Shown here: positions 3,494-33,541 of the stretch, piece after piece
Layout of the letters: the number at the start of each line of letters is the position of its first letter
How positions within the stretch are numbered: the stretch's first letter is position 1
Source: Andalucia godoyi And28
Lineage: Eukaryota > Protista > Jakobida
Length of the DNA: 64,000 nt
Assembly (NCBI GenBank): GCA_009859145.1
Contig: VRVR01000032.1
Location: forward strand, 202,795 to 266,794
Direction of reading: 5' to 3'
Translations under genes and position numbers: made by a program
The notes under the pieces: generated by a model
What the model saw: the letters and a program-made list of their open reading frames with translations, nothing else
What the model was told of the DNA's origin: nothing
The model's database searches: none

Positions 3494-3687
3494 GGCTCGA
3501 GGCTGTTCAGGTGCTCGGCCGGATTGATCGCGACTGGAATCGTGTGGGCAACAACATTTATCTCAAGAAGGCTGGCAAGGCGTGCTGGGGCCTACCCTCT
3601 TCCCGTCCATGGCGATATGGCCCGGGTTGCAGCATTGATCACGCATGACTAGCGATGGCCATGCATAACTCAGTGTCCAATGTGGGC
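3494..3687 (+). mobile_element. TnpB/Fanzor2-like remnant A: C-terminal zinc-finger/RuvC-III fragment plus putative omegaRNA scaffold
   Basis: Across a frameshift it reads GSRLFRCSA-G / IDRDWN-RVG-NNIYLKKAGKACWGLP. The following ~90-nt tail is homologous to the tails at 19290-19383 and 33230-33310. Confidence 0.75.
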
Positions 3688-3718
3688 ACCTAAGGTGAGT
3701 GCGTATAGCCCGTTAGAG

Positions 3719-3766
3719 TTTACTACTACTACTACTACTACGATTATTATTATTATTATTATTATT
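3719..3766 (+). repeat. (TAC)n(TAT)n trinucleotide microsatellite
   Basis: Directly visible tandem repeat. Confidence 0.9.
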
Positions 3767-3814
3767 ACATCTTAAAGATCAGGAAAGGAATGGGAAGAGG
3801 GTGTGGCTGCAAGG

Positions 3815-4852
3815 CTATCCGAAGAAGCCAAGGCCGACGCAAGAAGGATAGTCGGTGACGGAGAATGGCGCGTCCCAGATGACCTGGGCCGAGTCGATGT
3901 CCAAAGCAACGACATGGCCATCGCCGACCGGAATGAAGTTTCCTACATAGCCGTAAAACACACGGTTGGAAAAGTCAAAGACCATCGAATTGTGCTCAGC
4001 TCCAAAGCTATAGTTGGACAGCAAGTCTCCGACGGCGGTCAAGTTTCCAGTCTTGACATCGACGATCGCGAGACCAATTCCGTTCCAAGACCCAAAGTCG
4101 GTGAACGAAACGACGTTACCGGTCTTTGGATCTACTCCAAGACCAAACGTTCGAACCCACGTGCGGCCGCCCGTGTACTGCCGAGGAGCGGTCAGTGTCA
4201 GCACGCCTTCTGACACGTTTTGCGGAACATTGAATTTGAACACATAGGTGTTCACAGTCATTGCCTGTTGGTCATAGTAGTTGGAAGTTATCAGCATAAC
4301 GTCATCCACCATGGTGCAAGCCATGTCGCGCCAGACCCATCCATAAGGAATCCTGCCGTCGCGCCCCACCTGCTCGGTCACACCCGTCGAAAGATGCGTT
4401 CTGAAAATCTCGAAATACGTAGACGCGACGCCCAGCACCGCATAGATGGAGTTCGAGACCGGATCGATGTGCGCACATTGCACGCCCAGCGGATTGAACT
4501 GCGAAATCGCGTACGAATACGCAACAGTGCCATCAAGCTTGTACCCGATCAGCCGACTGCCGCCCGGACTTGTCTGTGCAAGCGTGTACGCCCAGATGAG
4601 CGACGCCTTGTAGTCCGGCCGCATCGTCGAGACCTTTGCATTGATATACCCAACATTCGCATTGACAACCTTTGCAACAGGAGACCCCGGCCCGGACAGC
4701 GACACGTCAAAACGGCCGATGGTGCCATCACACTCGCAGCATGAGCAGGATGGATTTGAGAAGATGTTGTACAACGACACGGAGCCGGCGTTCGCCAACA
4801 CAGCACTTGTACACAACAAACCCACAAGCGCAAGCAGAACCAAGCAACGCAT
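3815..4852 (-). CDS. Secreted protein, 345 aa, possibly a beta-propeller
   Basis: N-terminal signal peptide MRCLVLLALVGLLCTSAVLA, a Cys cluster (SCSCCEC) and a beta-strand-rich repetitive body. No family recognised. Confidence 0.8.
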   Translation of the reverse strand: MRCLVLLALVGLLCTSAVLANAGSVSLYNIFSNPSCSCCECDGTIGRFDVSLSGPGSPVAKVVNANVGYINAKVSTMRPDYKASLIWAYTLAQTSPGGSRLIGYKLDGTVAYSYAISQFNPLGVQCAHIDPVSNSIYAVLGVASTYFEIFRTHLSTGVTEQVGRDGRIPYGWVWRDMACTMVDDVMLITSNYYDQQAMTVNTYVFKFNVPQNVSEGVLTLTAPRQYTGGRTWVRTFGLGVDPKTGNVVSFTDFGSWNGIGLAIVDVKTGNLTAVGDLLSNYSFGAEHNSMVFDFSNRVFYGYVGNFIPVGDGHVVALDIDSAQVIWDAPFSVTDYPSCVGLGFFG

Positions 4853-5437
4853 CTGCTCTTTCCTTTACGCCTTTTCTCTTTTTGATATTGTTTTTCCTGC
4901 TCTTGTTTTTGAAACAATGTTGCCAGAACTAACGGAAATAAATTCTGCGCACTTACGCTCGTCCAGTTTCCCTCCAGCGAATCGACCAGGCAGCGGCGGA
5001 GTGCGGACTGTCCCAGCTCGGCACCGAAGCCCTGTCGAGCGCCGAAATGCGATCTGGTTTTTCGAACTCCAAAATAGGCAGCCAACGTGTGTAAGAGCTG
5101 GACACCAAATCTGCACGAGCGGACAATACGAACCTCAAGCAAGATTCCGAATTCCCCGATTTCCCGATTTTGGCCGTCTCGGATCCATCATCGACAGACT
5201 CAAGTTTCATTTCCCTCTGAAAAGTCCGACAACCGAATGCCCTGACGAACCCAGAGCACGTGATTTCGTGATTTTGTGATCCATGACGCTGCAATATCCA
5301 GCATATGTTCCAGGACTCCAGCTACGCTTATTGTAGTAATTCATCATCGTACTATACAGAGTGGTTATTGAAGAAATAGAGAGGAGGAGCCGGGGAAGAC
5401 GGGGAAAAAAAAATATACAAGAAGAAAAACACGTAGA

Positions 5438-5968
5438 ATGGGATGCATCGTGACCAAGTTTGCATTTTTGCCACCGACTGCAACCTATGATCACAACTTG
5501 CGAGATTTAGTATATACGAAATCTGCAAATTTCGTCATTCCAATGCAGTATGTGCGTCTTCCAGGATCGATGTATACTGTTATGTATCTTCATGGGAACG
5601 CCGAGGACATCGGTCTCGCAGGCCCGTTTGCAAGCTCGATATCGTCGTATTGCGGCGTCAGCGTTCTGGCTCCCGAGTACCCTGGCTACGGTCTTTCCGG
5701 AAAACTCCCTCCGGGCTCCAAGTCTGCACCAAGCCGGAAAGCCGTCCAGAAAGACACGGCAAATCGCGAATCGTGGTCCGACCAAAGCCTCGTCACGATC
5801 GTCCCAGGTCAGCCACAGCCCCAACCACGACAGATACAGCTACAGTTACAGTCACAACAAGAGTCGCCACAAGAGCCTCACTCGGCGTCTGAATGCGATG
5901 CAGCGCCTATGCAAATGGCAGTGCCTCCAAGAGAATCTGCGCGGAAGCGTGCTGCCTCTTCTGCCTCT

Positions 5969-6027
<59 letters not shown>

Positions 6028-6940
6028 GGTGTATGTTCCTCCAGAACGGAAATCACCGGCGATTTCAGCGAATCAGCATGCAGCGGAGGGGCAGAGGAGC
6101 GGGACTAGCAATTCAGCATCACACACCAGATCTCGATCTGCGGCGCCGCTGATCTCAAGCAAGAAATGCAAGCCGTCGCAGTCCGCAACTTTCGAAGCTG
6201 CAGAGGCTGCGTTGGCGTATCTGGTGTCGGATCTGGGGATCCCGCTGTCAAGGATTATTCTGTATGGACGGTCCCTCGGGTCTGGCCCGGCGTGCTACCT
6301 TGCGTCACGGCATGCCCTTATTGGTGGACTGATTCTGCATGCGCCGATTGAGTCTGCAATCCGAGTGGTCGTGCCGGGGTCTGTTGCCGGATGCATGCGT
6401 CCATGTGATATCTTTGCAAACCACAGACGAGCAAAGGACATTGAGTGTCCGGTGCTTGTCATCCACGGAACCGAAGACGATATTGTGCCTTTCCAGCATG
6501 GCGTCCGACTTTCCAAGCGCATGTCCAATCCAGTCGATCCGTTGTGGTGTGAAGGCGCAAATCATAACGATGTGGAAGTTGTTTCGGGAGACTTGCTTGT
6601 CGGCAGGATCGTTCGATTCATCGACGAGGTCGATCAGCACCACCACGTTGCCAGCGATGTTGTTCTCGTCGACAACACCGCCGCTGCTATCTCCTCCACC
6701 ACTACTACTGCCACCACTGTTACTGCTGCCGCTTCGGCTTTAGCTTCTGCACCACCCGCGCCACCAATGTCGATGGTTACACCGCCAACATCTCCGGAAC
6801 GCCCGTCATTTGTTCGCAAGCAGTCCTACTCTTCCATCACTGCTACGCCAAACAGTGGCAGAAACAGCCCTTCGCGATCTGATCGGCCCACAGACTTTCG
6901 TCGACCCACAGATCCCCCAGTCTTACAGCGCGAGACCTAG
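5438..6940 (+). CDS. ABHD17: ABHD17-like alpha/beta hydrolase (depalmitoylase) with a Ser-rich insertion
   Basis: MGC N-terminus, FAFLPP, YLHGNAEDIG, EYPGYGLS, nucleophile motif GRSLG, VIHGTEDDIV and GANHND. Confidence 0.9.
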
Positions 6941-7032
6941 ATTAACCAACGAACATTAAAGCATTCCCGGTTCCTCTTGTACTGTGCGATGATTAAATAA
7001 TTTATGTTCATGGTGTGCACTGGATGAAGATT

Positions 7033-7710
7033 CTAGGAAACATTTAGCGAGTCCTTGTCCCGAATACCGTTTTCTGCAAAGGTCCGCATCACATTCACAG
7101 CGCGAGGCGGCACGCCTGGGATTCTGACTGCCACTGTGCCCAGAACGTCCGCAACAACGCAATCTGCAGTGACTACCATGTCAATCGTCTTTCCATCCGC
7201 ATACCGAACTCGAATGGACAACTTTGGGGGTGGCATTGCGGCTGATGCTGATGATCCTGCTGATGCTGCCGACAACTGCGTCCCGAGCGTCGAGACCTTT
7301 GAATCAATCGTATCTTGAAGTTCCGAATGAATCTGGTCGTTCCACAGCCGCAGATTTGCAATGTCGAATCCTGCGCATTCTCGCCACAGTTCGCCCGTCG
7401 TGCTCCTGAACAGCCGAACAAAAGGAAGCACCGACGGCTGCGCAAGTCTGTCCTGTGTTGTCGAACTACCAGGACTGCTGTACGCTGTCCTGAGATCGCT
7501 CGATTCAATCAGAAACACGTTCGCGACAGGCAGTATTGAATCGCGGAGATAGGACTCGTATGGTAATGGCATCTCCACGCGCTTGGCGCACGGGTCAAGG
7601 AACCCTGGCGTCACTACCGCCTCGGTCGCAGCAGCACAGATGTGGATAACCAGAAAGTACTGCTTGGTCGCCAATTCACGAGCCTCTGCGTACGTATGCA
7701 CTTTCTGCAT
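7033..7710 (-). CDS. Thioredoxin-like plus UBX/ubiquitin-like domain protein, 225 aa
   Basis: N-terminal thioredoxin-like fold (LPFVRLFRS..GE). C-terminal LSIRVRYADGKTI...TFAENGI resembles UBX/UBL. Confidence 0.6.
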   Translation of the reverse strand: MQKVHTYAEARELATKQYFLVIHICAAATEAVVTPGFLDPCAKRVEMPLPYESYLRDSILPVANVFLIESSDLRTAYSSPGSSTTQDRLAQPSVLPFVRLFRSTTGELWRECAGFDIANLRLWNDQIHSELQDTIDSKVSTLGTQLSAASAGSSASAAMPPPKLSIRVRYADGKTIDMVVTADCVVADVLGTVAVRIPGVPPRAVNVMRTFAENGIRDKDSLNVS

Positions 7711-8248
7711 TTTTGCTTTCTTTCTCTTTCTCTTTCTCTTTCTCTTCCTCTCTCCCTCTCCCTCTCCCTCTCCCTCTCTTTCAGCTTATTCTCTTCCGCA
7801 CTTCTCTGTTCGATTGGACGCAGCTCACACAATACGAGTTCTGCAAGGTGCCTGGTTCTGCAAGCAGTACGTGCTGGTTCTTTGAGTCGTTTGAGAAACG
7901 CATACAGTAGTTTCGTGCAAGAGGAATGCAACCCTCCAAGCCCAATCGTCTGTGAAAACATCATCGGACAGTATGGCTGAAGGGGTGCAGGTCGAGGCCC
8001 AATGAGAGACTCTGTCGAATATTGACAACCGATTCCTTGTAGTCGATGATGGGCGCGGATGCGGATTGTAAAAGCCACTTTTTACGCCAAAAACATCTTT
8101 CTGAAGCGCAGCACGCGAGCCAAATGTTTGGAGAGGTTTGGGTTGGATGATAGTACCGACAAGATGAAGGGTAGGAGACGCGCGTATTCCGTAGTGGTGC
8201 TTTTTTTACAAGAGGGGAGAAACTGTATTTATTATTAGGCAGAGATGG

Positions 8249-10887: not shown

Positions 10888-11046
10888 TCATCAGTGTCAG
10901 TATCAGCGGCTTCGTGGGCGCATTGCTTCTTCTACCTTTTCTTTTTCTTCTTTGCTTTTTTACTTTTTTAATATTTGTACATAGTATGATTGTCGTTGCT
11001 GATGCTGATGCTGATGCCACTGTTGTTGGATGGCAGCGAATAAAAA

Positions 11047-11406: not shown

Positions 11407-11436
11407 GCTCTTCAGCGTCCACGGCGTTCCCTTTTG

Positions 11437-11440
<4 letters not shown>

Positions 11441-11520
<80 letters not shown>
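11441..11520 (+). repeat. (CT)n microsatellite
   Basis: Directly visible. Confidence 0.95.
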
Positions 11521-18671: not shown

Positions 18672-18995
18672 TTCGACTCGGATCCAGAAGAAGAAAGAAC
18701 GAAAATCACGATTGACCGTATATCACACGCACTCCCTTTCTCACCCTCTCTCTCTCTCTCTCTCTTTTTCTTTCTTTCTTTCTTTCTTTCTCTTTCACCT
18801 GTATGTATGTGTGTGTAGATATGAGCGTCAATGCGTGCGTCCGCGAGCGAAATGCACCTCATGATGGAAAGAGACCCAAAGAAGGTCCAGTAGTTATGCT
18901 GAGATTAACGTCCTCAGACTACAGCAGACAGCTCGTTTTGATAGACGCTTCTGCCTACAGTCGGGCCTCTTGCATGTGTAGTTGTTTTACTTGCG

Positions 18996-19383
18996 TATGA
19001 CTGCATTCTACTTCCGAAATTCGACAAGTCTCGTACGGTGCGGAGGGAGCCGGCAGAAGGGAAGAAACGCCGCATTGGAGACAAGACCGTGCGCCAGATG
19101 CTGACATGGGGCCACTTCCAATTCCGCCCAGCGACTGCTGCAACAGGCGATGGAGTACGCGGGTCGCGAAGTTCGCATCGCGACGGAAGAGTACACGTCC
19201 AAGACATGTGCAGCAGCGGAGAGGGATCGAGACTTGGAATGGAGCGCACATCTTCTGTTTGAAGAACGCTTCAGCGTACTGGGACTCACCCCCTTCTGAA
19301 TTGAATTCACATTTCCGTTCCGTTGCAAGATTGAATCTGGGCGGTCTGCAGTGATTCGCAACGCCGAAGTGTACAATGTAAGC
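18996..19383 (+). pseudogene. Degenerate TnpB/Fanzor2 nuclease (RuvC-II to RuvC-III) plus putative omegaRNA scaffold, remnant B
   Basis: Joining frames at +1 insertions near 19127 and 19234 gives YDCILLPKFDKSRTVRR...RRIGDKTVRQMLTWGHFQFR-QRLLQQAMEYAGREVRIATEEYTSKTC..(zinc finger largely deleted)..DRD-WNGAHIFCLKN. These are hallmark IS607-TnpB/Fanzor2 motifs. A conserved non-coding tail follows at 19290-19383. Confidence 0.88.
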
Positions 19384-19489
19384 ATTGGGAGAAGAACTGA
19401 TTTGCATGAAGAGGGAGGTTTTTTTTGTGAGCAGGCATGTTGTAATAATCTTATTACCATTCTTGTTTTGTTGCTGTTGAGCATCAGGA

Positions 19490-21529
19490 TTATTGCTGGG
19501 CGCAGTCGGCGGGTTCATCTTGTTTTGATCGCGGGTTTGAACTTGAGCGGATGGATTCAAACGACGATCGTCGATCTGATTCGCGCATCCGGTCTTCTGG
19601 AACACCAGCTGCGCCTTGGCTATGCGAGGATGGGCTTGGGCTTCTTCGATGTCGGGGAGACGCCTCTGAATAGTCTGCATTCTTCGAAGATGCGACCGGA
19701 GCTGCAGCAGAGGTCTCGGCAGGAGAAGCAGGAGAAGTCGCAGAGGACGTCGGAGAAGCCAACTCGCTCAAATTTCCAGGGTGCACAGCAGACGCTGTTG
19801 CATAGTGGGACGGAGACCCCACTACTTCGGCAGCGATTCGTCTCCAGCGCTCGAGCGATTTGATGAAGGAAGGACCCATTTTGGAAAGTGCATCCTCCGA
19901 TGCAGAGGTGGTGTCGATCGAAACATGCATCAACACAAGCTCGTTTCGGACCGAAATACCAACTCCACCTCCAGACATTTCACGTCCAAGCAATGCGCCT
20001 TCTAACAGACGTTCGAAAAGCTGCAGACGCACAGTGGGGTCTTTCGGAAGCATCGTCAGGATAGTGGAGTACAAATGGAGACGCTCCGTAAACGGGTCAA
20101 ACGTCACCAAAACATTAAAGTCTCGATGCACGTTCACCACGCACGTGTAATTGTCGTCGAAATCAGAAGTCTGCTCGGTATACATCTTGGAAAATGCAGC
20201 CAAGTTGGCTTTGGCAATTTCCATGGCCCCTTTTTGAACCTTTTCCTTTTCGCGATCAGCATCTTTCGCACGCGGACTCTTTGACATGGAATTGGAGGCA
20301 GAGTGGAGAGGAGAAGTAGAGACATTTCTCCTCGTGCCATTTCCGAATGCCGAGAATGTGGCCGGAGCCGACGACGAAGTAGGAGACAGCGTTGCATGCA
20401 GTTGCGGTTGCGGTTGCGGATGTGGTTGTGGTTGCGGTTGCGGATGCGATGGCGCAGACGAAATAGACTGCAAAGAAGATTCACCAGAGGCCGCGGAAAT
20501 CGACGGGCGAATCCGCGACGGAGGAATAGAACCAACGGCCCTGACAGTTGTTCCCGAGGGCGATCGATACAGAGGCGGAGTTCCCTGAGCAGCAGCACCA
20601 CCACCACCGTGCATTGACGAATTATTGCTGTTCAACGTGAAGGACGACTGACGAGCGGGAGGTGCAGAGGAAAACAACGGGGCAGAGTGATCTTCTTGAG
20701 AAATCGCAACTTCGTCATGCGCGTGGTCAAATGGAGGTCTGTAAGACCCCGTAGTGGCGCTCGATCGGACCGAAGAATAGTTCCCAGCGCCGCTCGGAGA
20801 AGCGGCGGCTGGAAACACGCTGGCAAGCGACTGCGAACGCGGAGAAACGCTCGAGCCTCCAGCCCCAACAGGCGACAAGCTAGATCGGTGCTGATTGTAC
20901 GCCAAGACCGAGAAGTTGCGTGGCAGAAGTCGAGATTGTCCTGTTGGAGACAGAGTAGACGACGAGTAATACGACGACGACACCGCAGAAGGCGACGGTG
21001 ACGATCCACGCGACGAACTCGACTCGGAATCGTTAAAGAAGGTGTCTCGAGGGTACTTTGAGATCTTCTCGTATCCATCCGAACCTGACGAGATCTTTCC
21101 ATTCTCTGTCGTCTCTTCAGTCTCAGCCAGGCGCTCCTTGGACGACGCATCATGACTACTCTCCGTACGCTTGGCCTCCGTTTGCGCATCGGCATCAGCA
21201 TCAGCATCGGGTCTGGGCATCGGGTTCGGGTTCGTGTTCGGTGTTGAAGACTCGGCACGCTCGATCGGTGCAGACTCGGTCCGTGCGTCGGACTCAGCTT
21301 CGGACACAAGCCGCAGCTCCAGCACTGCGCCGTTCTCCAACGACGGAATGGTCTCGGATGTAACAGGCAGCCCATTATTAAAAATGCTTTGCGCCTCGTA
21401 CGAAATCTGCGCCGCCTTTTCAATGTACCGTTTGATGCGATCCACTCTCAGCTCGGACGGGTCCTGCTTAAACACTATCTTGTACCGCGTCGCAGAAGAT
21501 GTATGAAGCACATATATATGGTTTGACAT
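19490..21529 (-). CDS. Protein with an N-terminal ubiquitin-like domain, a long disordered linker and a CesT/Tir-chaperone-like domain
   Basis: ATG at 21529: MSNHIYV...RYKIVF...IKRYIEK...QSIFNNG...LENGAVLEL (UBL). Near the C-terminus: DFDDNYTCVV...ERLHLYSTIL...LFERLLEGALLGREMSGGGVG...FIKSLERWR (CesT-like). Confidence 0.75.
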   Translation of the reverse strand: MSNHIYVLHTSSATRYKIVFKQDPSELRVDRIKRYIEKAAQISYEAQSIFNNGLPVTSETIPSLENGAVLELRLVSEAESDARTESAPIERAESSTPNTNPNPMPRPDADADADAQTEAKRTESSHDASSKERLAETEETTENGKISSGSDGYEKISKYPRDTFFNDSESSSSRGSSPSPSAVSSSYYSSSTLSPTGQSRLLPRNFSVLAYNQHRSSLSPVGAGGSSVSPRSQSLASVFPAAASPSGAGNYSSVRSSATTGSYRPPFDHAHDEVAISQEDHSAPLFSSAPPARQSSFTLNSNNSSMHGGGGAAAQGTPPLYRSPSGTTVRAVGSIPPSRIRPSISAASGESSLQSISSAPSHPQPQPQPHPQPQPQLHATLSPTSSSAPATFSAFGNGTRRNVSTSPLHSASNSMSKSPRAKDADREKEKVQKGAMEIAKANLAAFSKMYTEQTSDFDDNYTCVVNVHRDFNVLVTFDPFTERLHLYSTILTMLPKDPTVRLQLFERLLEGALLGREMSGGGVGISVRNELVLMHVSIDTTSASEDALSKMGPSFIKSLERWRRIAAEVVGSPSHYATASAVHPGNLSELASPTSSATSPASPAETSAAAPVASSKNADYSEASPRHRRSPSPSSHSQGAAGVPEDRMRESDRRSSFESIRSSSNPRSKQDEPADCAQQ

Positions 21530-21536
21530 TACGCCT

Positions 21537-21540
<4 letters not shown>

Positions 21541-21579
<39 letters not shown>

Positions 21580-21645
21580 GTCTCTGTCTCTGTCTCTGTC
21601 TCTGTCTCTGTCTCACGCACACACACGCACACACACACACACACA
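21541..21645 (+). repeat. Compound (CT)n(CTCTGT)n(CA)n microsatellite
   Basis: Directly visible. Confidence 0.9.
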
Positions 21646-21995
21646 CGCCGTCGCTTACAAAAGTCCGAAATGATTGAAATTTTCTAAATCCAAAAACGCG
21701 TTCAAAAAAGCTTTGATATGACATTAAGTACGCAAAAGCAGTGGGAAAACTCCAGAGTCAGCCGTTTGTCCCCCCGCCTAGTATCAATTCATCAACCCGC
21801 TTGCGGATGCTGCTGTAGAAGCACCGTTCGTACTGTAGTGGGAATACAGAGGACTTCAGCAATGAAAGTAGTAAGCTTTTTTTAATGTAGTTTTCATAGA
21901 AACTAAGTATTTCACGTTCCACAGCTACGAGTTTGGGGGACGGAAAAAGTTTAGGACGCACTTGAGAGGGGGACATACAAGTGGGATAAGGAAGA

Positions 21996-23436: not shown

Positions 23437-26400
23437 CTATTCTACCTTCAGAATAGTCTTGGCGCGCACCACAAACATCCATTCTTCTTTTGTCAAGTCG
23501 TTCTTGTGCAGCTCCTTCAGCGCATCAATGGACTTTCTGGTGAGATGTGCGTAAATGTCGACGTTCACAAAAGGACTCTTCTTCTTGTCCAGGAACTTCG
23601 TTGATTGGGTCGGATTGCGCGCCACAATCTTGATTGCAACTTGATCTCCTTTCTTCGCCGAGTCCACAGGCTTTCCTTCCTTTTCGATGGAAAGAACCTT
23701 TCCAAGGTCAATCAAGGTTCCGTCGGCTTGCGGAATCGCAACCGGGGTATTCGGCTTCAGCACACAATCCAGAACCTCGACACCAACAACAATCGGTTCC
23801 GTCGAATTGAACACACAGTTGGGAAGAATCTTGAAGCGGCATGGCCAAATGACAGATTCGGAAAGCTCCTTGTTGCGAATCTCCTTGAGTTCTCCAATGT
23901 ACTTGGTAAACATGTCAAACAAGTGGTAGATGATATCTGCTGAAAAGATACGCACCCCAACCTCATCGGCCATCGTCTGGGCCTCAGCGGTGATTTTGAC
24001 ATCGAATGCAAGGATGACCGCGTATTCGCGGGCAGACTCCAGCATGATTGATGCTCGCATAACATCCTTCTTGTAGACAGAGCCAAGGCCAATGGCAGAC
24101 ACCGGAATCTTTGAATCCTTCAAAAAGGACATAAGCGCCTCCAGAGATCCCAACGTAGATGCCTGCACATACACGCCCTTGCCAGTGCGGTCCAACTTGG
24201 ACAGCAGTGTCTGCAGGTCTTCCATGACCTGGTTGCTTGCAGCCTCCAATTCCGCATCGTTTTTGACAACCATCAGTGCCGATCCCGCCACTGCATCCTC
24301 CAGACCCGGAGCAGAGATCTTGATTCCCTGCGCAGCCTCGAGTTCCTTGTGATGGACATATTCTCCTCGCACACGAATTTCCCGCATAGGCTTTGGAGTA
24401 AGCAGTGCTCTGATTGTCGTCACAATAGGACCGCTCAGCCCGCACACAACAATGCGGTCACCTTCTCTCAGGGTTCCGTTGACGAGGATGACATCGATCG
24501 TCGTTCCCAGACCTTCAATGATCTTGACCTCCAGAACCGTGCACTCAAGCTTGTTGGACAGGTACAGCAAACGTTCGGCCATGTGGCGCTGCGTCAGCTG
24601 CAGAATAAGCATCAGCAAATCGGGAATACCTTCTCCAGTGTGTGCGGACGTTGGAACAATCGAAACATTCTGCAAAAAATTGGGATTCTTCCAATACAAG
24701 TGCGTGTTGATAGAAAGCTCCGCAAACTGCGTCTGGACAAACCTCAAACGCTCGTTGAACTCGTGCTCACCGTCTTTGTTGCGATCCAGCGACTCGCGGA
24801 TGGCACCATCGGGAATGGCGTTCCAGCCGTACAAACGATCAACCTTGTTCAACGCGATTACAAACGGCGTCTTGCGCGACCTCAACAGCTCAATGGACTC
24901 TCGAGTCTGGGGCTCCAGCCCGTGCATGAGATCCACAACCACAACCGCAATGTCACACAAAGACGATCCGCGAGACCGGAGATTCGAGAAAGACTCGTGC
25001 CCCGGAGTATCGATGACAAGCAAACCCGGAACTTCCTTCATCAACCGGTCTGCACCCTGAACGCGCGAAATACGCTGCATAAGGTTGGCCAGCGGGAAGT
25101 ATGTCGCACCGATTTGCTGGGTGATACCCCCCGCTTCATTGTCTTGAACGTTCGTACCGCGAATCTTGTCCAGCAACTTGGTTTTGCCCACGTCCACGTG
25201 TCCGAGAATGACGGCAATCGGAGAACGAAGCGTCTTGGGCTTTTCTTTCTTCGAAGACGTCGCAGAAACCGCTGAAGTCGTGTCGGCAGCTGTCTGCGAT
25301 TCTGCTGCTGCTTCTGACTCCTTCTGCTTGGGTACGGGAGCTCCACTGGGCTTCACGGGCTGTTGTTGCACGACTGGAGCTGGATCTTCATCAACTACCT
25401 CCCAACTGTTGTCAGAGCCCTTGCTGTCCGGCTCGTGCTCAGCATCGTCTTCGACATCCGAGTCGGCAAGTTGTTCCCAGTCTTCAACTTCCTCCTCCTC
25501 TTCCACTACCTCGTCCTTCTGCGCATCGAGAGACATCGCACCCATCCGTTCACGAACAGCATTCTCTAAAGATTCGCGTTCTTTGCGCAATCTCTCTTCT
25601 TCTTTTGCCTTCTCGCGATTCTCACGTTCGATCGCAAGCAGCCGATCGCGCTCTTTCTGCTCCGCTTCGAGTTTCGCAATAACATCCTCTTTCTTCGGCT
25701 TCTTTGGCTGATGTGGCAGCTTCTTGTCTTCCTTCTTTTTCTTCTCTTCCGCAGATGACTGAGACGGTACTGGTGCTTGTGTTGCTGATTGCGCCTTTGA
25801 CTCGTTCTCGTCGTCCGACTCATCGTGTGCACTGCCGGGAAGTTGAGCATCTGCCGGAATCAATCCCATCTTCTTCATTTGCTCGAGACGGATAAGTTCG
25901 AGTGCACGCTTCTTCTTCTGGCCTTCAGTCAGAAGCTTTCCCTCTTTTCGCAACTGCTCACGCTTCGCAGCGCGCTCCTCTGCCTTGCGCTTCTTCTCGG
26001 CTTCCTTTCTCTCGGCTTCCTCCACTCGCCGGCGCTCTTCCTCTTCCTCCTTTCGCACTCGTTCTTCCTCTTCACGCTTCAGACGTTCAATCTCCTCCAA
26101 TTGCTTGCGCTTCATCTCAAGAATCTTGGATGCTGCGGCACTTGGCTTCTTTGCAGGCTCCTCCTTCTTCTTGGTATCTTTTTTCTTGTCCTCCTTCTTT
26201 GCGCCCGGATCTTCCTTCTTTTCCTCGGAAACATCTGCGCCCTGAGTTGGCAAGACTGCTGCGGAAGCAGAGATGGTCGCAGCACTTGGCTCTTGGCCTG
26301 CAGCATCCAGTTCGTTTGCAGCATCCGTCTTCGCCTTTGGCCCTCTCTTTCTCTTCTTCTTGTCCTCTTCTGCGGTCTTTTCACTTGCGCCGGGTCCAAG

Positions 26401-27246
26401 AATATCTTCAAGAACGTCATCAAAGTCATTACCCTTCTTCTTTCCTTTGTTCTTATCGTCCTTCGCCTTCTCGGTCTGTGTCTTTGGTGCAGTCTGTTCT
26501 TTTGCAGGTTGCGCCTCCTTCTTTGGAGCATCCTTTTTCACAGAAGGGACCGGCTGTTTCTTCTTTTGTGGCTTCTTTGAGTCGACCTTCGCCTCCTCCT
26601 CCTCCTCCTCAGAATCTTCTTCTTCCTCCTCCTTCTCAGCATCGTCATCATCGCCGTGATCAAGCATCGAAAACGCCGAAAACATGGACGATTTTCCAGC
26701 CTTGGAAGCCGGCTTCGATTGCGCAGGCTTCGCAGACAGTGCAGCAACAATCCCAGCACCCTCTTCACCCTCACTCTCAGCACTGCCATCGTCGTCGTCG
26801 CTTCCAGATTCAGACTTCTTTTTGCTCACAATCTTCTGGTTCTTGGATATTGCAGATATCCGTTCTTCTTCACTTTCCGAGTCCGATTCCTCTGCACTCT
26901 TCTTTCGAGTTGCAGGCTGTTGTTTGGATGCATTCTTTGCTGCTGCTTGTTGACTCTTTTTGGGCTTTGCAGACACAAACTCGTCTTCCGAATCCGCATT
27001 TGACGGCGCGTCGACTGGTTTTTCGTCCGTTTCGTCTTGCCGTCCTTTGTTTTTCTGGTTCTTCTTGTTTGTGGGGGCCTTTCCTCTGGATCCAGCATCG
27101 TTCTCATGGTCTACATCGTCGTTCTGTGCTTCAGGAGCCTTGGACTTTCCCTTGTTTGCAGGCTTTTTGGACGCTTCCGGAACTTCGTCCACATCATTCA
27201 GCATCTGGGACAAGAGGTCGTCCTGTGCATTCTTCTTTTTTCCCAT
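23437..27246 (-). CDS. EIF5B: Translation initiation factor eIF5B
   Basis: LRSPIAVILGHVDVGKTKLLDKIR, GGITQQIGATYFP, IDTPGHESFSNLRSRGSSLCD, YVQASTLGSLEAL and a charged N-terminal extension. Confidence 0.98.
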   Translation of the reverse strand: MGKKKNAQDDLLSQMLNDVDEVPEASKKPANKGKSKAPEAQNDDVDHENDAGSRGKAPTNKKNQKNKGRQDETDEKPVDAPSNADSEDEFVSAKPKKSQQAAAKNASKQQPATRKKSAEESDSESEEERISAISKNQKIVSKKKSESGSDDDDGSAESEGEEGAGIVAALSAKPAQSKPASKAGKSSMFSAFSMLDHGDDDDAEKEEEEEDSEEEEEEAKVDSKKPQKKKQPVPSVKKDAPKKEAQPAKEQTAPKTQTEKAKDDKNKGKKKGNDFDDVLEDILGPGASEKTAEEDKKKRKRGPKAKTDAANELDAAGQEPSAATISASAAVLPTQGADVSEEKKEDPGAKKEDKKKDTKKKEEPAKKPSAAASKILEMKRKQLEEIERLKREEEERVRKEEEEERRRVEEAERKEAEKKRKAEERAAKREQLRKEGKLLTEGQKKKRALELIRLEQMKKMGLIPADAQLPGSAHDESDDENESKAQSATQAPVPSQSSAEEKKKKEDKKLPHQPKKPKKEDVIAKLEAEQKERDRLLAIERENREKAKEEERLRKERESLENAVRERMGAMSLDAQKDEVVEEEEEVEDWEQLADSDVEDDAEHEPDSKGSDNSWEVVDEDPAPVVQQQPVKPSGAPVPKQKESEAAAESQTAADTTSAVSATSSKKEKPKTLRSPIAVILGHVDVGKTKLLDKIRGTNVQDNEAGGITQQIGATYFPLANLMQRISRVQGADRLMKEVPGLLVIDTPGHESFSNLRSRGSSLCDIAVVVVDLMHGLEPQTRESIELLRSRKTPFVIALNKVDRLYGWNAIPDGAIRESLDRNKDGEHEFNERLRFVQTQFAELSINTHLYWKNPNFLQNVSIVPTSAHTGEGIPDLLMLILQLTQRHMAERLLYLSNKLECTVLEVKIIEGLGTTIDVILVNGTLREGDRIVVCGLSGPIVTTIRALLTPKPMREIRVRGEYVHHKELEAAQGIKISAPGLEDAVAGSALMVVKNDAELEAASNQVMEDLQTLLSKLDRTGKGVYVQASTLGSLEALMSFLKDSKIPVSAIGLGSVYKKDVMRASIMLESAREYAVILAFDVKITAEAQTMADEVGVRIFSADIIYHLFDMFTKYIGELKEIRNKELSESVIWPCRFKILPNCVFNSTEPIVVGVEVLDCVLKPNTPVAIPQADGTLIDLGKVLSIEKEGKPVDSAKKGDQVAIKIVARNPTQSTKFLDKKKSPFVNVDIYAHLTRKSIDALKELHKNDLTKEEWMFVVRAKTILKVE

Positions 27247-27744: not shown

Positions 27745-27746
27745 CG

Positions 27747-27786
<40 letters not shown>

Positions 27787-27835
27787 GAACAAGAAGAAGA
27801 AGAAGAAGGAGAAGGAGAAGGAGAAGAAGGAGAGG
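27745..27835 (+). repeat. (CAA)n(GAA/GGA)n microsatellite
   Basis: Directly visible, just upstream of the ATG at 27860. Confidence 0.9.
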
Positions 27836-27859
27836 TAGAAGGAAGAGCGTGTTTTTGCT

Positions 27860-29563
27860 ATGGGTTGTGGAAACTCCAAATCCAAGCACCCAAAGAGGCC
27901 CAAAAGTAACTCGATCGCCCCTCTGACATCATCAGAGACTCCACTATCGTCTGATGACGCCCCGCGATACAAGGTGGTTCTTGTTGGCGAGCCAAACAGT
28001 GGGAAATCATGCGTGTTTACTCGGCTGACAAAATCAAAGTTCTCTGCAAACGACGCGTATGTACCTTCTCAGCGAGCTGCAATCGGCATCAAGTCGTTCC
28101 AGTTCCCGCTTCCCCCGACTGTCGCCGCGGCCGTCGCCGAGAAGAAGTCAGCAAAGACAAGAGACAGAAGCAAGAACAAGAACAAGAGCAAGAGTAAGGA
28201 CAAGAATAAGGACGACGAGGATGTCAGTCCGCCACAGACAGTCCATTTGCAGCTTTGGGACACGCCGGGAAAGGCGATTGTGGATGTGAAGAGCGTGACG
28301 TACAAGAATGCAGATGCAGTGGTCGTTGTGATCGATGCTTCAAGAACGCAGCCAGAAGACCTTGAACGGAAGATCTCAAAGTACGTTGCGGAGGTGATCA
28401 ATGTTGTTGCGAAGGAGAACGCTGCCACGGAAATGCAGCAGTCACAGTCCGTGAACAGCAATGGAAATGGAGTGGAGAATGAAATCCAGATCATCATTCC
28501 GCAGCCGGGAATCCGCATGCCTCTGATCGCGGTGTGTCTGACAAAGATGGACTTGCCTGTCTTTGTGCGCGCAGAGACGTTTTCGAAGAGATTGAGAAAT
28601 ATTCTTAGAGTGCAGAAGGTGTTTGAAACGAGCGCGTTGGCGGATCAAGGGGTCCATCAGTCGTTTCGAACGCTTTCGCGATCCTTGTTGATGAGAGATC
28701 CGAGGTACGTAAGGATCTTCGCAACGGCTGCGAGGACGCCGTCTGGGCATTTCCTTCCGCCTTCAAGACCAGCCTCCACGACTCTCGGGCCGCGAAAGAT
28801 GTTCGGTGTTGCGTTGTCCTCGCTCATCTTTGAGGAAAATCGACACCGACTGATTCCTGAATTGGTCGACGTCTCTGTTTCGTTCCTGCGCAGGTATGGG
28901 ACCGCTTGTTCAAACATTTTTGTCGATACAGAACGAGAAAGAACTGGGGAGGTGTCTATCCAGGATTGGAAGAATAGAATCGAGACGGCGGGCTCATGTG
29001 CTGTCTTGTGGGAGTGCAACGACGCGTGGATCGTTGCTGCCATTTTGAAACAATTTCTGGCGAACCTCCCCGATCAAGTGATCCCCTCCTCTTTGCATGA
29101 TCAGTACCTCGCGACTGCGAATACGGATATTCCGTTGGATCAGAGGCTTTTCAAATTGAGGGAACTCTGGGGACAGCTGGACAAGGCTCCGCGGTATCTG
29201 GTGCGTTCCATCATGCGATTACTGAACTTCCTCTCGTCCTTCAGCGAAAAGACAAATATTTCGTCTCAGTCTCTGGGCGTTGCGATCTCTCCCTGCATTG
29301 TGCGCGTTACTGTCAGTTCAGAAATCGCAAGCGGCACCGGTCTTGTTCAACAGCTCCGCAGCTGGCATGCGGTGTGTGAAATGATGATCCGACACGCACC
29401 GTTCATCTTCAATTCCTCGCACAAGGACACCTCCACACCCTCCGAGACAAACCCTTCCGAGTACGAAGATTTGGACTTCCGAGATGGAGAATCGGATCGG
29501 AACACCGATCGGGACGCCCACACCGAAAGTCTCGCCACCAACTCGGAGCATTCTGCGGACTAG
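27860..29563 (+). CDS. N-acylated small-GTPase plus RhoGAP-like fusion protein
   Basis: MGCGNS acylation motif; G1 GEPNSGKS, G3 WDTPG, G4 TKMD, G5 ETSA; then MFGVAL...IPELV...VAAILKQFLANLPDQVIP...N.SSQSLGVAISPCI (RhoGAP). Confidence 0.85.
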   Translation: MGCGNSKSKHPKRPKSNSIAPLTSSETPLSSDDAPRYKVVLVGEPNSGKSCVFTRLTKSKFSANDAYVPSQRAAIGIKSFQFPLPPTVAAAVAEKKSAKTRDRSKNKNKSKSKDKNKDDEDVSPPQTVHLQLWDTPGKAIVDVKSVTYKNADAVVVVIDASRTQPEDLERKISKYVAEVINVVAKENAATEMQQSQSVNSNGNGVENEIQIIIPQPGIRMPLIAVCLTKMDLPVFVRAETFSKRLRNILRVQKVFETSALADQGVHQSFRTLSRSLLMRDPRYVRIFATAARTPSGHFLPPSRPASTTLGPRKMFGVALSSLIFEENRHRLIPELVDVSVSFLRRYGTACSNIFVDTERERTGEVSIQDWKNRIETAGSCAVLWECNDAWIVAAILKQFLANLPDQVIPSSLHDQYLATANTDIPLDQRLFKLRELWGQLDKAPRYLVRSIMRLLNFLSSFSEKTNISSQSLGVAISPCIVRVTVSSEIASGTGLVQQLRSWHAVCEMMIRHAPFIFNSSHKDTSTPSETNPSEYEDLDFRDGESDRNTDRDAHTESLATNSEHSAD

Positions 29564-29946
29564 CACTTTGGTATTTATTGTTTTTTCTTTCACTTTCACC
29601 TTCTTTTTTTTCCCCCTCCCTTCAAATTTTGTCATCCTTATACAGATTGGCGTTGGCATTGTACCATATTCGTAACACTCACACGAGAAGAAGAAGACAA
29701 TCATAAAATAGTCGTTGTCGTCCGGAGCAATTTTTTTTTGTTTGGTCCATTGCGCGCAGCGTTATTCTCAACGCGGATCAAAGCCATCCTTTTTTTTTGG
29801 GTTTCAAATCGAGCTCGCCACTCAACATGATTCACTGGGGCTCTCTCGAGGCTTGAACAGAAGACGGCTCGCTGATGCATGGTCAGAACGAGCGTTTGCG
29901 CACCCACACGAACGCGAACGTCCATGCGTGCATCGTCACCCGACGA

Positions 29947-31084
29947 CTACCCTTCAATTTCTCGAATTGCACGCTCCGTGTGATCCAGTTCTGCAACCAA
30001 TTTTCCGTATTCTGCAACCAGCGAATTGAACGTTCGCCCAAGACCTTCAAACTGCGACAGACGTCCTTTGCTCATCTCGAGTTCTTTGGAGAGTTCTGCC
30101 ATCCTTGCACTCAGCTCAGCTTTGCAAGCCTTCACCGCATCAATCGACCCCTGCTTGCCATAAACATCCATCAACATCTGGTACTTCACAACACTCAATT
30201 TCAAAACAAGCGCCTCTGCTCGGGCTTGCAGATAAAGCGACGAGGTCTGAATATGCTTCGGTGTCACTTCTAGGTCGCTCTGTATACCAGAATCCAGAGT
30301 ATTCGTTGCTTGATCCAATGTCTAGAAAACCAAAACGGCGTGAGTACGATCCCAGAGTGAACGGTAAACAACAACTAACATACCCTTGTCGAGTCTTTGA
30401 GCACGGAACAGACGTGAAAATTCACAGCCGCTGCATCATCACTTAACTTGCCGATTTCCGAACGAAGTTCCTTCACTCTGGACGCCAGGATCGCAGGATT
30501 CATACGGGCAGACACCGTGCTTAGAATAGATGATACACGCGATGCCAGCACGTCCACACGGTCTTCAATCTCGGCCACCAACGCATCTCCAACTCTGCGA
30601 CTTCCGTCCGTGCTCGAACTGGGCTTCTCGGCACTCATCAACGTCCCAATCAATTCACTCTCCTGCACATCAAAACCACATTCAAAACGTTAACTCAACC
30701 GAACCGAACTGAGATGCACTGGGGCTGGAAGGACAGGGGGAAAACATACAATGGGAATCAGTTCTTGGACATTTCGCATAAGGAATGACGACACGAGGAA
30801 GTTTGCACGTTCTCGCAGCATCTTTTGTGAAGCCTGTAGATTCCCCTCAAAAAAATGATAGAAAAGAAATGAGAAAAATAACAATGAGTGTCAAAACAAA
30901 ACGATACAATACAAGCGGAAATAAGGATACGGCCAGTCGATAGTGGTACACATACGATCTGCAAGTCTTCGGACAGTGATGCATCCGAGGCATCTTTGCC
31001 AATCTTTGCTTCCAAGCTCGTCAGCAATGTTTGGAACTGCGGGAACTGCGGGAACTGCTCCACTGGATTCACAATCACAGACAT
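29947..31084 (-). CDS. HAUS4: HAUS4 (augmin subunit 4)-like, 4 exons: 31084-30956, 30845-30750, 30662-30384, 30321-29947 (~292 aa)
   Basis: Three GTATGT...AG introns, all phase 0, join four ORF pieces in frame. The C-terminus FEGLGRTFNSLVAEYGKLVAELDHTERAIREIE resembles the HAUS4 tail. Confidence 0.75.
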
Positions 31085-31243
31085 GCCTTCTTCTCCCTGT
31101 CTCTCTCTCTCTCTGTCTCTGTCTGTCTGTCTGTCTGTCTGTCTTTCTTGGCCACAAACACCAAAAAACAACAGGCGGAAGTGGGCTCCCGGCTTTTTAA
31201 CGTTCAATCCGAGTCCCGGTTTTGTTTATTCGGAGGCTTGATT

Positions 31244-31268
31244 GCCCTAACCCTAAATTCCTAACCCT
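31244..31268 (+). repeat. Short interstitial CCCTAA (telomere-like/telo-box) motifs
   Basis: CCCTAACCCTAAATTCCTAACCCT lies between the divergent HAUS4-like and Dre2 genes. Confidence 0.45.
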
Positions 31269-31481
31269 GGCTATCACGATAAAAAAAATCCCCGATTCCC
31301 GTTCTATTTTCTATCTCCTGCCATTCTTCATTCGACTTTTGATGTGTTTGTGAGGAGTGTTGTTTGATCTGTTGTCTTTTTTTAATCTTTTTGTTTACCA
31401 TTGACCGTTCATAAAGCCGAGACGTCTTCTTTTCTTCTTTTGTATATTTTTTGTTTTTTTTAAATTTAAAAGAAAGAGGGG

Positions 31482-32006
31482 ATGAGCCGAGAGCTGAAAG
31501 CGTCTGAGAGTCTTGGTGACCTCTTCTCGAATCTGGAGTCCGGGCAAACAGCGACTGTTCCTGCTTCTCGCAATCTGAGTGCGTCAGATGTGATCTACAG
31601 TGGATTTGTGCTGGTGGAGACTACGACAGCCGGGGATCTGGTGATTCAGAAGCCGACATACGACAGCTCTGCGACATATGCACTGAATTTGCAGCCGGAC
31701 GATTTGGTGGACGAAGACTCGCTTTTGGATCCTGCGACGTTCCAGAATAAGCCAGTGTATGATTGCGGCGCGGATGACTCTGGAAAGAGGAAGGCTTGCA
31801 AGAACTGCTCGTGTGGGCTTGCGGAGGAGTTGAAAAAGGGCGAGCAACAACAACAGCAGCAGTCTGCGCTGCCAAAGTCTTCATGCGGAAATTGCGCACT
31901 TGGGGACGCCTTCCGGTGTGCATCGTGCCCGTATCTTGGAATGCCTGCTTTCAAGCCAGGCGAAAAAGTCCAACTTGCTGGTGCATTTGCATCGGATGAT
32001 ATTTAA
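31482..32006 (+). CDS. DRE2: Anamorsin/Dre2 (short form)
   Basis: LVDEDSLL, C..x8..[11 protein letters not shown] and [32 protein letters not shown]. Confidence 0.95.
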
Positions 32007-32142
32007 TTTATGTTTATTCGCTTTGTTCTTCATCGAGATAAATGAACTATATGGACTCCTTTTTTAAATAATGATAATTATTTTAAAATGGAGGGATGTT
32101 ACGACCTACAAAGACACACAAAGAAGCGAGCAAGTACCGACA

Positions 32143-32955
32143 TTATCCGAATTGAAATCCGGAGACTTGGATGGCAGGAAGCCCCTGCATAATCTGCGAG
32201 CAATCGTTAAACACCCGTACACCTGGATCCTGCAGTGCGGCACCGGCCACAACAAACAGCGGTACAAGGTGGTCTTCTTGTGGATGAGCAATGCGAGCAC
32301 CAGGTGCCTTCTCCCACATGACGAGTTTGTCGTGTCGGACATGCGAGTCGGACGATGCACAGCAAGCATCCACGAGATACTCGTCGAATGCCTTGGATGC
32401 AACCGTCGAATTCGGCGGAAAATTCAAGTTGTGGAACGAGTATCCTGAGCCAATGATCAAGACGCCCTCATCTCGAAGTGGCGCAAGTGCTTCTCCAACC
32501 TGCAAGTGAAGCTTTGGATCATACGACTTGTGGATGCTGAGCATCACAACCGGAATGTCTGCGGCGGGAAAGCTCACAGCGAGAGGAACAAACACCCCGT
32601 GGTCAAACCCACGCTTTGCATCTTCCTTGCAAGCGATTTCGGAGTCCCGGAGAAGCGCCCGGACTCTCGCTGCAATCTGCGGATTCCCCGGGGCTGCATA
32701 CTGGATCTTATAGGTGTGCGCAGGAAAGCCGCCGTAGTCGTACACCATTCCCGGACGTGCGCTGGTGGACACCGTCACCGCCGACTCTTCCCAATGCGCA
32801 CTCACAATCAGAATCGACTTCACCTCGTTCATGGGCAGCTGCTTTGGAAGGTCCGTCAAGTACTCTTTCAGCTTTGCAAATCCATTTCGTGCACCAAAAT
32901 CCATCCACGGCCAAGGGCCGCCTCCGTGAGAAATAAACAATACTGGCAAACGCAT
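32143..32955 (-). CDS. LigB-family extradiol dioxygenase (DODA/YgiD-like)
   Basis: LFISHGGGP, SAHWE, MVYDYGGFP, RGFDHGVFVPL, GSGYSFHNL and AHPQEDHLVPL. Confidence 0.93.
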   Translation of the reverse strand: MRLPVLFISHGGGPWPWMDFGARNGFAKLKEYLTDLPKQLPMNEVKSILIVSAHWEESAVTVSTSARPGMVYDYGGFPAHTYKIQYAAPGNPQIAARVRALLRDSEIACKEDAKRGFDHGVFVPLAVSFPAADIPVVMLSIHKSYDPKLHLQVGEALAPLRDEGVLIIGSGYSFHNLNFPPNSTVASKAFDEYLVDACCASSDSHVRHDKLVMWEKAPGARIAHPQEDHLVPLFVVAGAALQDPGVRVFNDCSQIMQGLPAIQVSGFQFG

Positions 32956-33229
32956 CCTCGGTGTGTGCGTGTGTGTGTATGTGCGTGTGTGCTCCTGCTT
33001 AATAAAGCCTTGAACAGTGAAAATCGAAGAGAAAAGAAAAGAAAGGAAAAGAACAGCTAAAAACTATTATCGTCCGTTAAGCGTCCCGTGGAATAACGTG
33101 GACGTTGTGCGCAGCGCGGCGTTTCAGAGCGGCGATATAAAATCAATTTTTCTTTTTGAAAAGTCGGGAGTTTCTGTCGGGGCTTGAGAGCCTCAATCGG
33201 GAAGTTTCTGTCGGGAATATGTCATATTC

Positions 33230-33541
33230 GCTTACCATTATACACTGAGCATGCATATCTACGAATAGACATGCATATTCAATCCTTGCATCCCGTTGCC
33301 GGGAAGGGGATAGGCCCCCACAGGCTTTGCTGGCGTTCTTCAGATAAATGCTCCGCGCTCCGTTCCCAATCTCGATCAATCGGTGAGCCACTTTCTCAGC
33401 GTGGCACGTTGTTCCTGAGAAGGGTGCATTTTTGATTCTGACAGCCCTAGCAGTAGGTGTAGTGACACGTGGTCTCTTAGGAGGTCTGCGGGACCTAGGA
33501 GGCCCTGTATCGAGCGGCGTAGGCGTAGGCGAATGCGTCAT
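33230..33541 (-). mobile_element. Internally deleted TnpB/Fanzor2 derivative, remnant C (N-terminus fused to RuvC-III) plus putative omegaRNA scaffold
   Basis: From ATG at 33541: MTHSPTPTPLDTGPPRSRRPPKRPRVTTPTARAVRIK/(fs)MHPSQEQRATLRKWLT, joined directly to IDRDW/(fs)NGARSIYLKNASKACGGL. The tail carries GCAA and UUCG tetraloop hairpins. Confidence 0.85.

Follow-up and report, generated by a model that had tools for sequence, protein, structure and literature searches.

In a 64,000-nucleotide stretch of the genome of the jakobid Andalucia godoyi And28 (GenBank assembly GCA_009859145.1, contig VRVR01000032.1, positions 202,795 to 266,794 of the forward strand), it was found that three short loci carry related remnants of a TnpB/Fanzor2 nuclease gene and of what appears to be the guide-RNA scaffold overlapping and following its 3′ end. 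This stretch is called the window, and all positions are counted from its first nucleotide. Copy A lies at 3523-3688 on the forward strand, copy B at 18945-19384 on the forward strand, and copy C at about 33541-33229 on the reverse strand, possibly beginning at about 33580. All three lie between long open reading frames (ORFs), which are mostly ordinary cellular genes. A previous reading of the same DNA, made from the letters alone (the sequence-only reading), had reported three related loci here. That observation is confirmed and the three places were right, except that copy B begins about 50 nt earlier than was stated. The peptide IDRDWNGARNIYLKNA is common to A, B, and C. In copy A, the peptide beginning with GRIDRDWNRVGNNIYLKKAGKACWGLPSS stays in a single frame as far as a stop codon at 3646-3648. 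One frameshift (marked here by a slash) is required in copy B, DRD/WNGAHIFCLKN, and one in copy C, IDRDW/NGARSIYLKNASKACGGL. Thus, the C-terminal strings quoted in the sequence-only reading are present in all copies, but those of B and C each span a frameshift that was left unstated.

The DNA similarity among the loci is also above chance, as had been claimed. In a blastn comparison of the window with itself, A and C were 75% identical over 84 nt (E 1.5e-8), and B and C were 78% identical over 45 nt (E 1.5e-4). Aligned locally, A and C correspond over about 200 nt, 3481-3682 with 33419-33236. A GGG(G)-N5-CCC(C)CTTC motif followed by a tail of about 90-100 nt occurs in A, B, and C. No fourth copy was found within the 64-kb window by blastn, by a protein profile, or by an RNA model (both described below), and three copies in 64 kb are suggestive at most of the high copy number supposed in the sequence-only reading. 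None of the copies has an intact nuclease ORF, in agreement with the sequence-only reading, and none was found within the window when the protein profile was run against its six-frame pieces.

Copy B keeps the longest part of the protein. The C-terminal half of the nuclease lies at 18945-19212 (+) in two frames, with a frameshift at 19127/19129, and reads AYDCILLPKFDKSRTVRR..KRRIGDKTVRQMLTWGHFQFR and then QRLLQQAMEYAGREVRIATEEYTSKTCA, so that about 135 codons are kept. An HMMER search seeded with the protein P0001 gave 5162 representative relatives, many of them 450-700 aa in length, and a family profile of 62 full-length relatives was run against all six-frame pieces of the window. In this hmmsearch, 18945-19127 corresponds to profile positions 412-452 (E 1.3e-14) and 19129-19212 to positions 453-479 (E 6e-8); tblastn gave E 1e-14 for copy B. 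When joined across the frameshifts, copy B matched the Pfam family PF07282 (Cas12f1-like TNB) with E 3.8e-5, at 24.2 bits against a cut-off of 26.3. P0001, the sole word-sharing relative in a large protein collection, is 51% identical to copy B (E 2.7e-10). The best match of copy B in the PDB was 9b0l, the TnpB-like protein L79 of mimivirus, which I take to be ApmFz2, a Fanzor2; the direct E-value was only 0.06. However, P0002, the closest full-length relative tested, matches 9b0l over nearly its whole length with E 3e-25, and a profile of 25 family sequences matched it with E 3.6e-63, the next matches, to TnpBs, being at 1e-24 or weaker. Among the 21 PDB matches listed, no chain was named Fanzor1, and several were labelled only "Transposase". 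With these matches, the assignment to TnpB/Fanzor2 made in the sequence-only reading stands.

Copy B also has the Fanzor signature, ILLPKFDKS without a glutamate at the canonical place and EEYTSKTC with the alternative glutamate. The [TS][TS]xxC motif with the preceding catalytic glutamate is found in copy B alone among the three copies. The DPG motif of RuvC-I (ALDPGVRTF) was seen in the relatives only. The relatives have an N-terminal HTH_OrfB_IS605 domain, of which the window keeps only a 17-residue start in copy C; save for that segment, no piece of the window matches family-profile positions below 412, and the RuvC-I aspartate was not found. The RuvC-III remnant of copy B lies with a deletion junction at 19213-19270 (+), where DRD at 19225-19233 is followed by a frameshift into WNGAHIFCLKNAS. 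The RuvC-III motif of the TnpB/Fanzor superfamily, (D)RDxN(G/A)AxNI close to the C-terminus, is recognizable in all three copies, as DRD/WNGAHI in B. In comparison with P0001, P0037, and others that carry CxxC...CxxC there, about 25-30 codons between TSKTC and RDRD are gone, and 5 residues remain instead of about 30. This is the C4 zinc finger, which is present in all relatives and absent in A and C as well as in B. The window copies are remnants, and there are no functional members among them. Copy B is a 5′-truncated copy that kept the region from RuvC-II to RuvC-III, lost the zinc finger, and acquired frameshifts and a decayed scaffold.

Less of the protein is left in copies A and C. In copy A, a C-terminal remnant at 3523-3648 (+) reads IDRDWNRVGNNIYLKKAGKACWGLPSSRPWRYGPGCSIDHA up to the stop codon. 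Its RuvC-III motif DRDxN..NI is disturbed by an insertion (IDRDWN..NNI); RIDRDWN..NNIYLKK falls on profile positions 502-520 with E 23, and a blastp comparison with P0037, the nearest relative, gave E 9e-5. Copy A is a bare right-end fragment made up of RuvC-III codons and scaffold. In copy C, an N-terminal piece of the nuclease lies at 33385-33541 (-), directly upstream of the C-terminal motif on the same strand. It begins with an ATG at 33541-33539, continues with PPKRPRV, which resembles a nuclear localization signal (NLS), and enters the WED domain at 33435-33385 (-), reading (R)IKMHPSQEQRATLRKWL with one frameshift in a run of A. The N-termini of relatives, for example P0118 and P0041, resemble that of copy C. 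The segment SKMHPSQEQRATLRKWL corresponds to profile positions 140-156 (irlyptkeqkkvLkkwf), the start of the WED and helix-turn-helix (HTH) region; over the whole window this match has E 1.6 and ranks fourth of 2346 six-frame pieces, and its local p is about 0.004 by a rough estimate. The RuvC-III remnant IDRDW/NGARSIYLKNASKAC at 33329-33380 (-), with the motif IDRDW/NGARSI and one frameshift, is fused directly to this N-terminal piece; NGARSIYLKNASKA falls on profile positions 508-521, and the comparison of copy C with P0037 by blastp gave E 2.8e-6. In copy C, profile positions 157-501 have been deleted internally, and the start of the WED domain is fused directly to IDRDWNGARSIYLKN. It is a mini-element of about 310-350 bp with an almost intact scaffold. 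The sequence-only reading had called the copies right-end modules, which describes A; in contrast, C keeps an N-terminal piece and B keeps its stretch of the C-terminal half.

What follows the protein remnants shows one architecture in the relatives and in A, B, and C. The order is a first stem-loop (SL1) yUGGGrCCUAnCCCC, a variable SL2, (U)UGCA, a long variable SL3, and a 3′ pentamer, after which comes (C/A/U)G, where the element ends. Across the relatives, SL1 lies in varying reading frames or past the stop codon; therefore, it is a nucleic-acid signal and not a peptide. The 5-nt loop of SL1 is complementary to the 3′ pentamer, and both change together, the pairs including CCUAC/GUAGG, CUACA/UGUAG, CCUAG/CUAGG, CUUAG/CUAAG, CCUGG/CCAGG, CUUGA/UCAAG, and CUUGC/GCAAG. 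From an ordinary MAFFT alignment of 15 relatives, RNAalifold picked this long-range helix. Over 35 distinct sequences, in an alignment that was fitted to the model, all six pairs of the pseudoknot show changes on both sides and 94% of the cells are paired. The covariation score was 0.356, against 0.123 in shuffles (none of 500 as high) and at most 0.094 in slid controls. A pseudoknot is reported to be required for IS607 TnpB and has been predicted for the reRNAs of Fanzor2 (PMC10711439, section 26), and the covarying pseudoknot found here matches it.

A covariance model, R1, was built from 15 metagenomic tails only, with no window sequence, and was searched without filters over both strands of the window (128 kb). 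The first three ranks were C, A, and B, and noise began at 10.2 bits. In about 640 kb of related control loci, each of the 45 matches was downstream of the nuclease match and on the coding strand. In the relatives, A, and C, the matches extend over the entire model and stop where the element does. The outer stem of SL3 shows a compensatory change, AUUGA/UCAGU in A and C versus ACGCU/AGCGU in L004, the locus of P0037. No match to Rfam was found anywhere in the window at gathering thresholds. The stability of the whole tails is unconvincing (z = +0.59 for A and -1.37 for B); thus, the structural argument rests on covariation and not on energy. These results support the identification of the tails as homologues of an omegaRNA scaffold. 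The overlap of such an RNA with the 3′ end of the ORF, as proposed in the sequence-only reading, is borne out, and the two conditions that it had named for its own refutation were both examined and did not refute it.

The best-preserved scaffold homologue is that of copy C at 33229-33328 (-), the top R1 match, of full length, with 19.9 bits (E 0.007). It has SL1 at 33319-33306 (loop CCUAU), SL2 at 33303-33292, the UGCA motif, SL3 at 33283-33244, and the pseudoknot partner GUAAG at 33235-33231, and its right end is 33229. SL3 has a perfect 12-bp inner stem with z = -4.26 (none of 200 shuffles as stable), and four of the five pseudoknot positions are paired, or six of seven if the helix is extended. 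In copy A, the scaffold homologue at 3577-3688 (+) is a full-length match of 18.4 bits (E 0.016), with SL1 at 3587-3599 (loop CCUAC at 3591-3595), SL3 at 3632-3676, the partner GUGGG at 3682-3686, and the right end at 3688. Its pseudoknot is paired at all five positions, one of them G-U, and its SL3 is weaker than that of C (z = -1.66). The homologue in copy B at 19271-19384 (+), delimited by alignment with A, C, and L004, is decayed. It keeps SL1 at 19281-19293 (GGGACUCACCCCC), the UGCA motif, and the partner GUAAG at 19378-19382, with the right end at 19384; the R1 match of 12.3 bits (E 0.45) is misaligned at the 3′ end, SL3 is poorly formed (z = +0.95), and four of the five pseudoknot positions are paired. 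A and B end with GCA, the norm of the family being GCG. In TnpB and Fanzor2 reRNAs, the guide lies directly 3′ of the scaffold end (PMC10711439). By that analogy and from position alone, the flank of A at 3689-3708 (+), CCTAAGGTGAGTGCGTATAG, may have been the guide if the RNA was made, and that of C at 33209-33228 (-), AATATGACATATTCCCGACA, is its would-be counterpart.

What kind of element carried these genes? The nuclease is preceded, immediately upstream and on its own strand, by a resolvase-type serine recombinase in 57 of 84 related loci, L004 among them (Pfam Resolvase, E 3.8e-18). Since this gene order is so frequent, the family is assigned to the IS607 type, as the sequence-only reading had supposed. 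The elements of the relatives are 2.0-2.2 kb in length, as delimited by multi-copy pairs in differing flanks. The right-end homology between multi-copy relatives stops 0-2 nt past the end of the model, and two contigs end exactly there. Breaks of metagenomic contigs coincide exactly with element ends: L004 ends at 2029, L009 ends at 2007, and L023 starts at the left end. Such breaks are expected of a multi-copy repeat that halts assembly, and they mark the boundaries independently. Copy C has a candidate left-end motif, TTTCACTTTTTATTCAAATA, at 33561-33580 (-), which resembles the left ends (C)CACC(C)TTTTTRC of L013, L014, and L021. Within the window, 24 places fit a loose version of the pattern, and its position at C has a p of roughly 0.02; this left end is tentative.

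Two features of the recombinase gene of the relatives were observed. First, tnpA of L013 (about 815-890) and of L014 (about 600-680) contains a short AT-rich insert, GT...TACTAAC...TAG, the removal of which restores the recombinase frame (VVVTRK/DRLCRFG). The insert resembles a spliceosomal intron whose branch point follows the consensus, and it suggests a eukaryotic host for these IS607-type elements. Second, the Fanzor2 frame of the relatives is the +1 frame of the upstream tnpA and is free of stops over the whole recombinase match in 27 of 34 loci. Over this match (486-663 nt), the mean number of stops is 0.47 in the Fanzor2 frame versus 8.3 in the third frame. Examples of the overlap, all outside the window, are L021:424-1029, L077:547-1088, and L004:63-608. 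The N-terminal motifs PFWN..KLWLP..SWFS of the long Fanzor2 ORFs are the +1 reading of conserved TnpA motifs. Thus, the long N-terminal extension of Fanzor2 appears to be overprinted on tnpA, an arrangement that was not found described in a limited literature search.

Taken together, the three loci are most probably independent, old, inactivated insertions of one IS607-type Fanzor2 family, a eukaryotic TnpB, a reading to which I assign a probability of roughly 0.9. Intact relatives encode a serine recombinase (TnpA) and, downstream of it, a Fanzor2 RuvC nuclease whose last codons overlap an omegaRNA (reRNA) scaffold of about 110 nt ending exactly at the right end. By analogy with the TnpBs of IS607/IS605 and with ApmFz2, TnpA would cut and paste the element, and the nuclease would be loaded with the right-end RNA, the 3′ part of which would read into the flank. 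The nuclease would then cut matching empty sites, and the element would be copied back through repair. Present-day activity in the window copies would require an intact copy elsewhere in the genome.

Several points weigh against this reading. No remnant of TnpA was found in the window (best tblastn E 0.6), so the IS607 carrier type is inferred from the relatives. The right ends at 3688, 19384, and 33229 are defined, in contrast to the left ends. At the window copies, neither a target-site feature nor a crossover dinucleotide is readable, and no target-site duplication (TSD) was seen in the relatives, where the boundaries are good to a few nt only. A and C alone have no significant protein-profile match (E 23 for A; E 1.6-2.3 for C), and they are assigned by their homology to B and P0037 and with the RNA model. 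The R1 E-values (0.007, 0.016, and 0.45) are modest and their calibration is rough; the pair counts of the pseudoknot, as said above, come from a fitted alignment. The choice of Fanzor2 over Fanzor1 follows the best matches and not a phylogeny. Fanzor2 has also been reported in other types of transposons (PMC10530073, PMC10711439).

Among the alternatives, A, B, and above all C might be working non-autonomous modules, that is, omegaRNAs guiding an intact Fanzor2 elsewhere, as the sequence-only reading supposed, and/or copies mobilized in trans by TnpA. C has SL1, SL2, the perfect 12-bp stem of SL3, and four of five pseudoknot pairs, and A has all five. Pairing in the scaffold stems persists despite their differences among A, C, and L004, and the codons that overlap them carry frameshifts, a pattern consistent with selection for the structure of the RNA or DNA and not for coding. 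In addition, extra stand-alone copies of guide RNAs have been reported for Fanzor1 in Chlamydomonas (PMC10530073). However, the window has no intact nuclease or TnpA, and the search of the protein database found no close relative of B, the best being only 51% identical. B has a decayed scaffold (z = +0.95), the pseudoknot has one mismatch in B and one in C, and A and B end with GCA instead of GCG. A deletion junction shared by A and C would prove copying of the mini-element. The alignment of A and C reaches about 40 nt upstream of IDRDWN, but its anchored extension is not significant (p about 0.15 against shuffles and random window segments), and an upstream-only alignment is no better than shuffles; the shared junction was rejected. 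I consider working modules unlikely.

A related idea concerns mini-elements of about 0.3 kb like copy C, with a left end, an ORF stub, a complete scaffold, and a right end. They could form a eukaryotic family resembling MITEs (miniature transposable elements with inverted repeats), or be orphan guides co-opted to direct Fanzor2 to host sites. In the former case, TnpA and Fanzor2 would be borrowed from a master copy, and each insertion would supply its own homing guide. A literature search for reports of mini-Fanzors or such MITEs gave generic MITE papers only. The idea is speculative, and I would give it about one chance in ten.

It is rather improbable that the Fanzor2 lineage was carried by another transposon. 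Fanzor2 elements with TSDs and terminal inverted repeats (TIRs), or tied to Helitron or hAT, have been described (PMC10711439, PMC10530073), and such a carrier would agree with the missing TnpA remnant and the unclear left ends in the window. Against it, a resolvase lies directly upstream in L004/P0037 and 56 other loci, which are the closest relatives both in protein and in tail, and the boundary of the element is also the end of the scaffold, just as in the IS607 relatives. Scars of integrated giant-virus DNA are still less probable, with only a slim chance. Fanzor2 is enriched in giant viruses, relatives with 27-39% identity lie on giant-virus contigs, and a matching tail is present at two viral loci, L087 and L094; a scan of viral contigs with the single protein P0037 found nothing, but an alignment-based scan did find these relatives. 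However, the neighbours of the copies are all ordinary cellular genes, no viral hallmark genes were seen, each copy stands isolated in an intergenic region of its own and measures 170-440 bp, and non-viral metagenomic relatives are closer, with up to 47% identity. That the similarity comes from chance or low-complexity sequence, as the shortness of the motifs and the insignificant profile matches of A and C might suggest, is refuted by blastn (E 1.5e-8), by the profile match of B (E 1e-14), and by the independently built RNA model, which picks exactly A, B, and C as the top three in 128 kb.

As IS607-type Fanzor2 remnants, the window copies can be compared with known systems. The closest solved structure to the family is that of ApmFz2 (L79 of Acanthamoeba polyphaga mimivirus, PDB 9b0l), which has the same domain order and, like the relatives of the family, belongs to an element combining an IS607-type recombinase with the nuclease. 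The ApmFz2 element has a conserved 3′ non-coding RNA reaching the right end (PMC10530073). In contrast, the sequence identity is low, and the window copies are broken and lie in a cellular genome. The viral relatives mostly differ in the tail, since R1 matches only 5 among 80 loci. The bacterial IS607 TnpBs share the serine-recombinase partner, the right-end RNA with a pseudoknot, and the alternative glutamate of RuvC. In their reRNAs (e.g., that of ISXfa1), right-end stem-loops are accompanied by a pseudoknot that is required and that joins an apical loop to the 5 nt adjoining the guide (PMC10711439). The alternative-glutamate signature marks the clade from which Fanzors arose, and DPG in addition is a Fanzor signature (PMC10711439). 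Unlike the bacterial elements, the relatives of the family look eukaryotic (NLS-like N-termini, the spliceosomal-type intron of L013/L014, and DPG), and the window copies have neither TnpA nor an intact ORF.

Truncated derivatives are also known. The 5′-truncated CRe elements and TE-N2_CMe are truncated or non-autonomous; TE-N2_CMe, whose type is unclassified, corresponds to the 5′ part of a Fanzor1 element (PMC3627910). In Chlamydomonas, a guide RNA has about 20 additional copies (PMC10530073). Like the window copies, known derivatives of Fanzor and TnpB are short, bear the RNA or keep both ends, have lost the nuclease gene, and are present in several copies per genome. Unlike those found here, they derive from Fanzor1 or from bacterial elements, and not from an IS607-type Fanzor2. 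Earlier work (PMC3627910, PMC10530073, PMC10711439) already covers IS607-like elements with Fanzor2, the presence of several copies in one genome, conserved 3′ RNAs, truncated or non-autonomous derivatives, and guide-RNA copies standing alone. Thus, the window copies are genuine, but they belong to a known kind of mobile element and are an unremarkable case of it. They add to the hosts of IS607-type Fanzor2 one eukaryotic lineage without a close relative in the databases searched, and they illustrate how such elements decay, the RNA-bearing right end outlasting the gene. The covariance model and the covarying pseudoknot for the scaffold of this Fanzor2 clade make gene-less remnants findable in genomes. 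Overprinting would be the origin of the long N-terminal extension in these eukaryotic nucleases, provided that the stretch overlapping tnpA is translated.

The neighbouring genes include those of eIF5B, LigB dioxygenase, UbiA, 3-beta-HSD, PDH-E1, a desaturase, SPX-EXS, ribosomal protein L4, and a histone deacetylase (HDAC). Since the neighbours of the loci are mostly ordinary cellular genes, a gene-dense eukaryotic host with long uninterrupted ORFs is supported, and the description of the genome as gene-dense in the sequence-only reading fits. The GTPase region of eIF5B, at 23437-27246 (-), has no database relative above 60% identity (the best are at 55-60%), and its best matches are scattered over plants, fungi, and metagenomes. 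To judge from eIF5B and other housekeeping ORFs, the host lineage seems sparsely covered by public protein sets.

A few observations concern the immediate surroundings of the copies. A stop-free frame at 33143-33781 (-), of 212 codons (229 between stops), spans all of copy C and beyond, with 130 codons when counted from the ATG of C at 33541. It may be due to chance or be a transcribed chimeric ORF; as a host gene, this 212-aa ORF was rejected, having nothing in its favour beyond its openness. The 744-aa ORF adjoining copy B, at 19490-21724 (-), matches Pfam CesT at residues 522-628 (E 2.9e-11). CesT is a family of chaperones of bacterial type III secretion and is unusual in a eukaryotic gene. 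The 553-aa ORF adjoining copy C, at 33873-35534 (+), has long runs of (GQ)n, (NS)n, and (TE)n. Copy A is followed immediately by the microsatellites (TAC)6 and (ATT)9, at 3721-3770.

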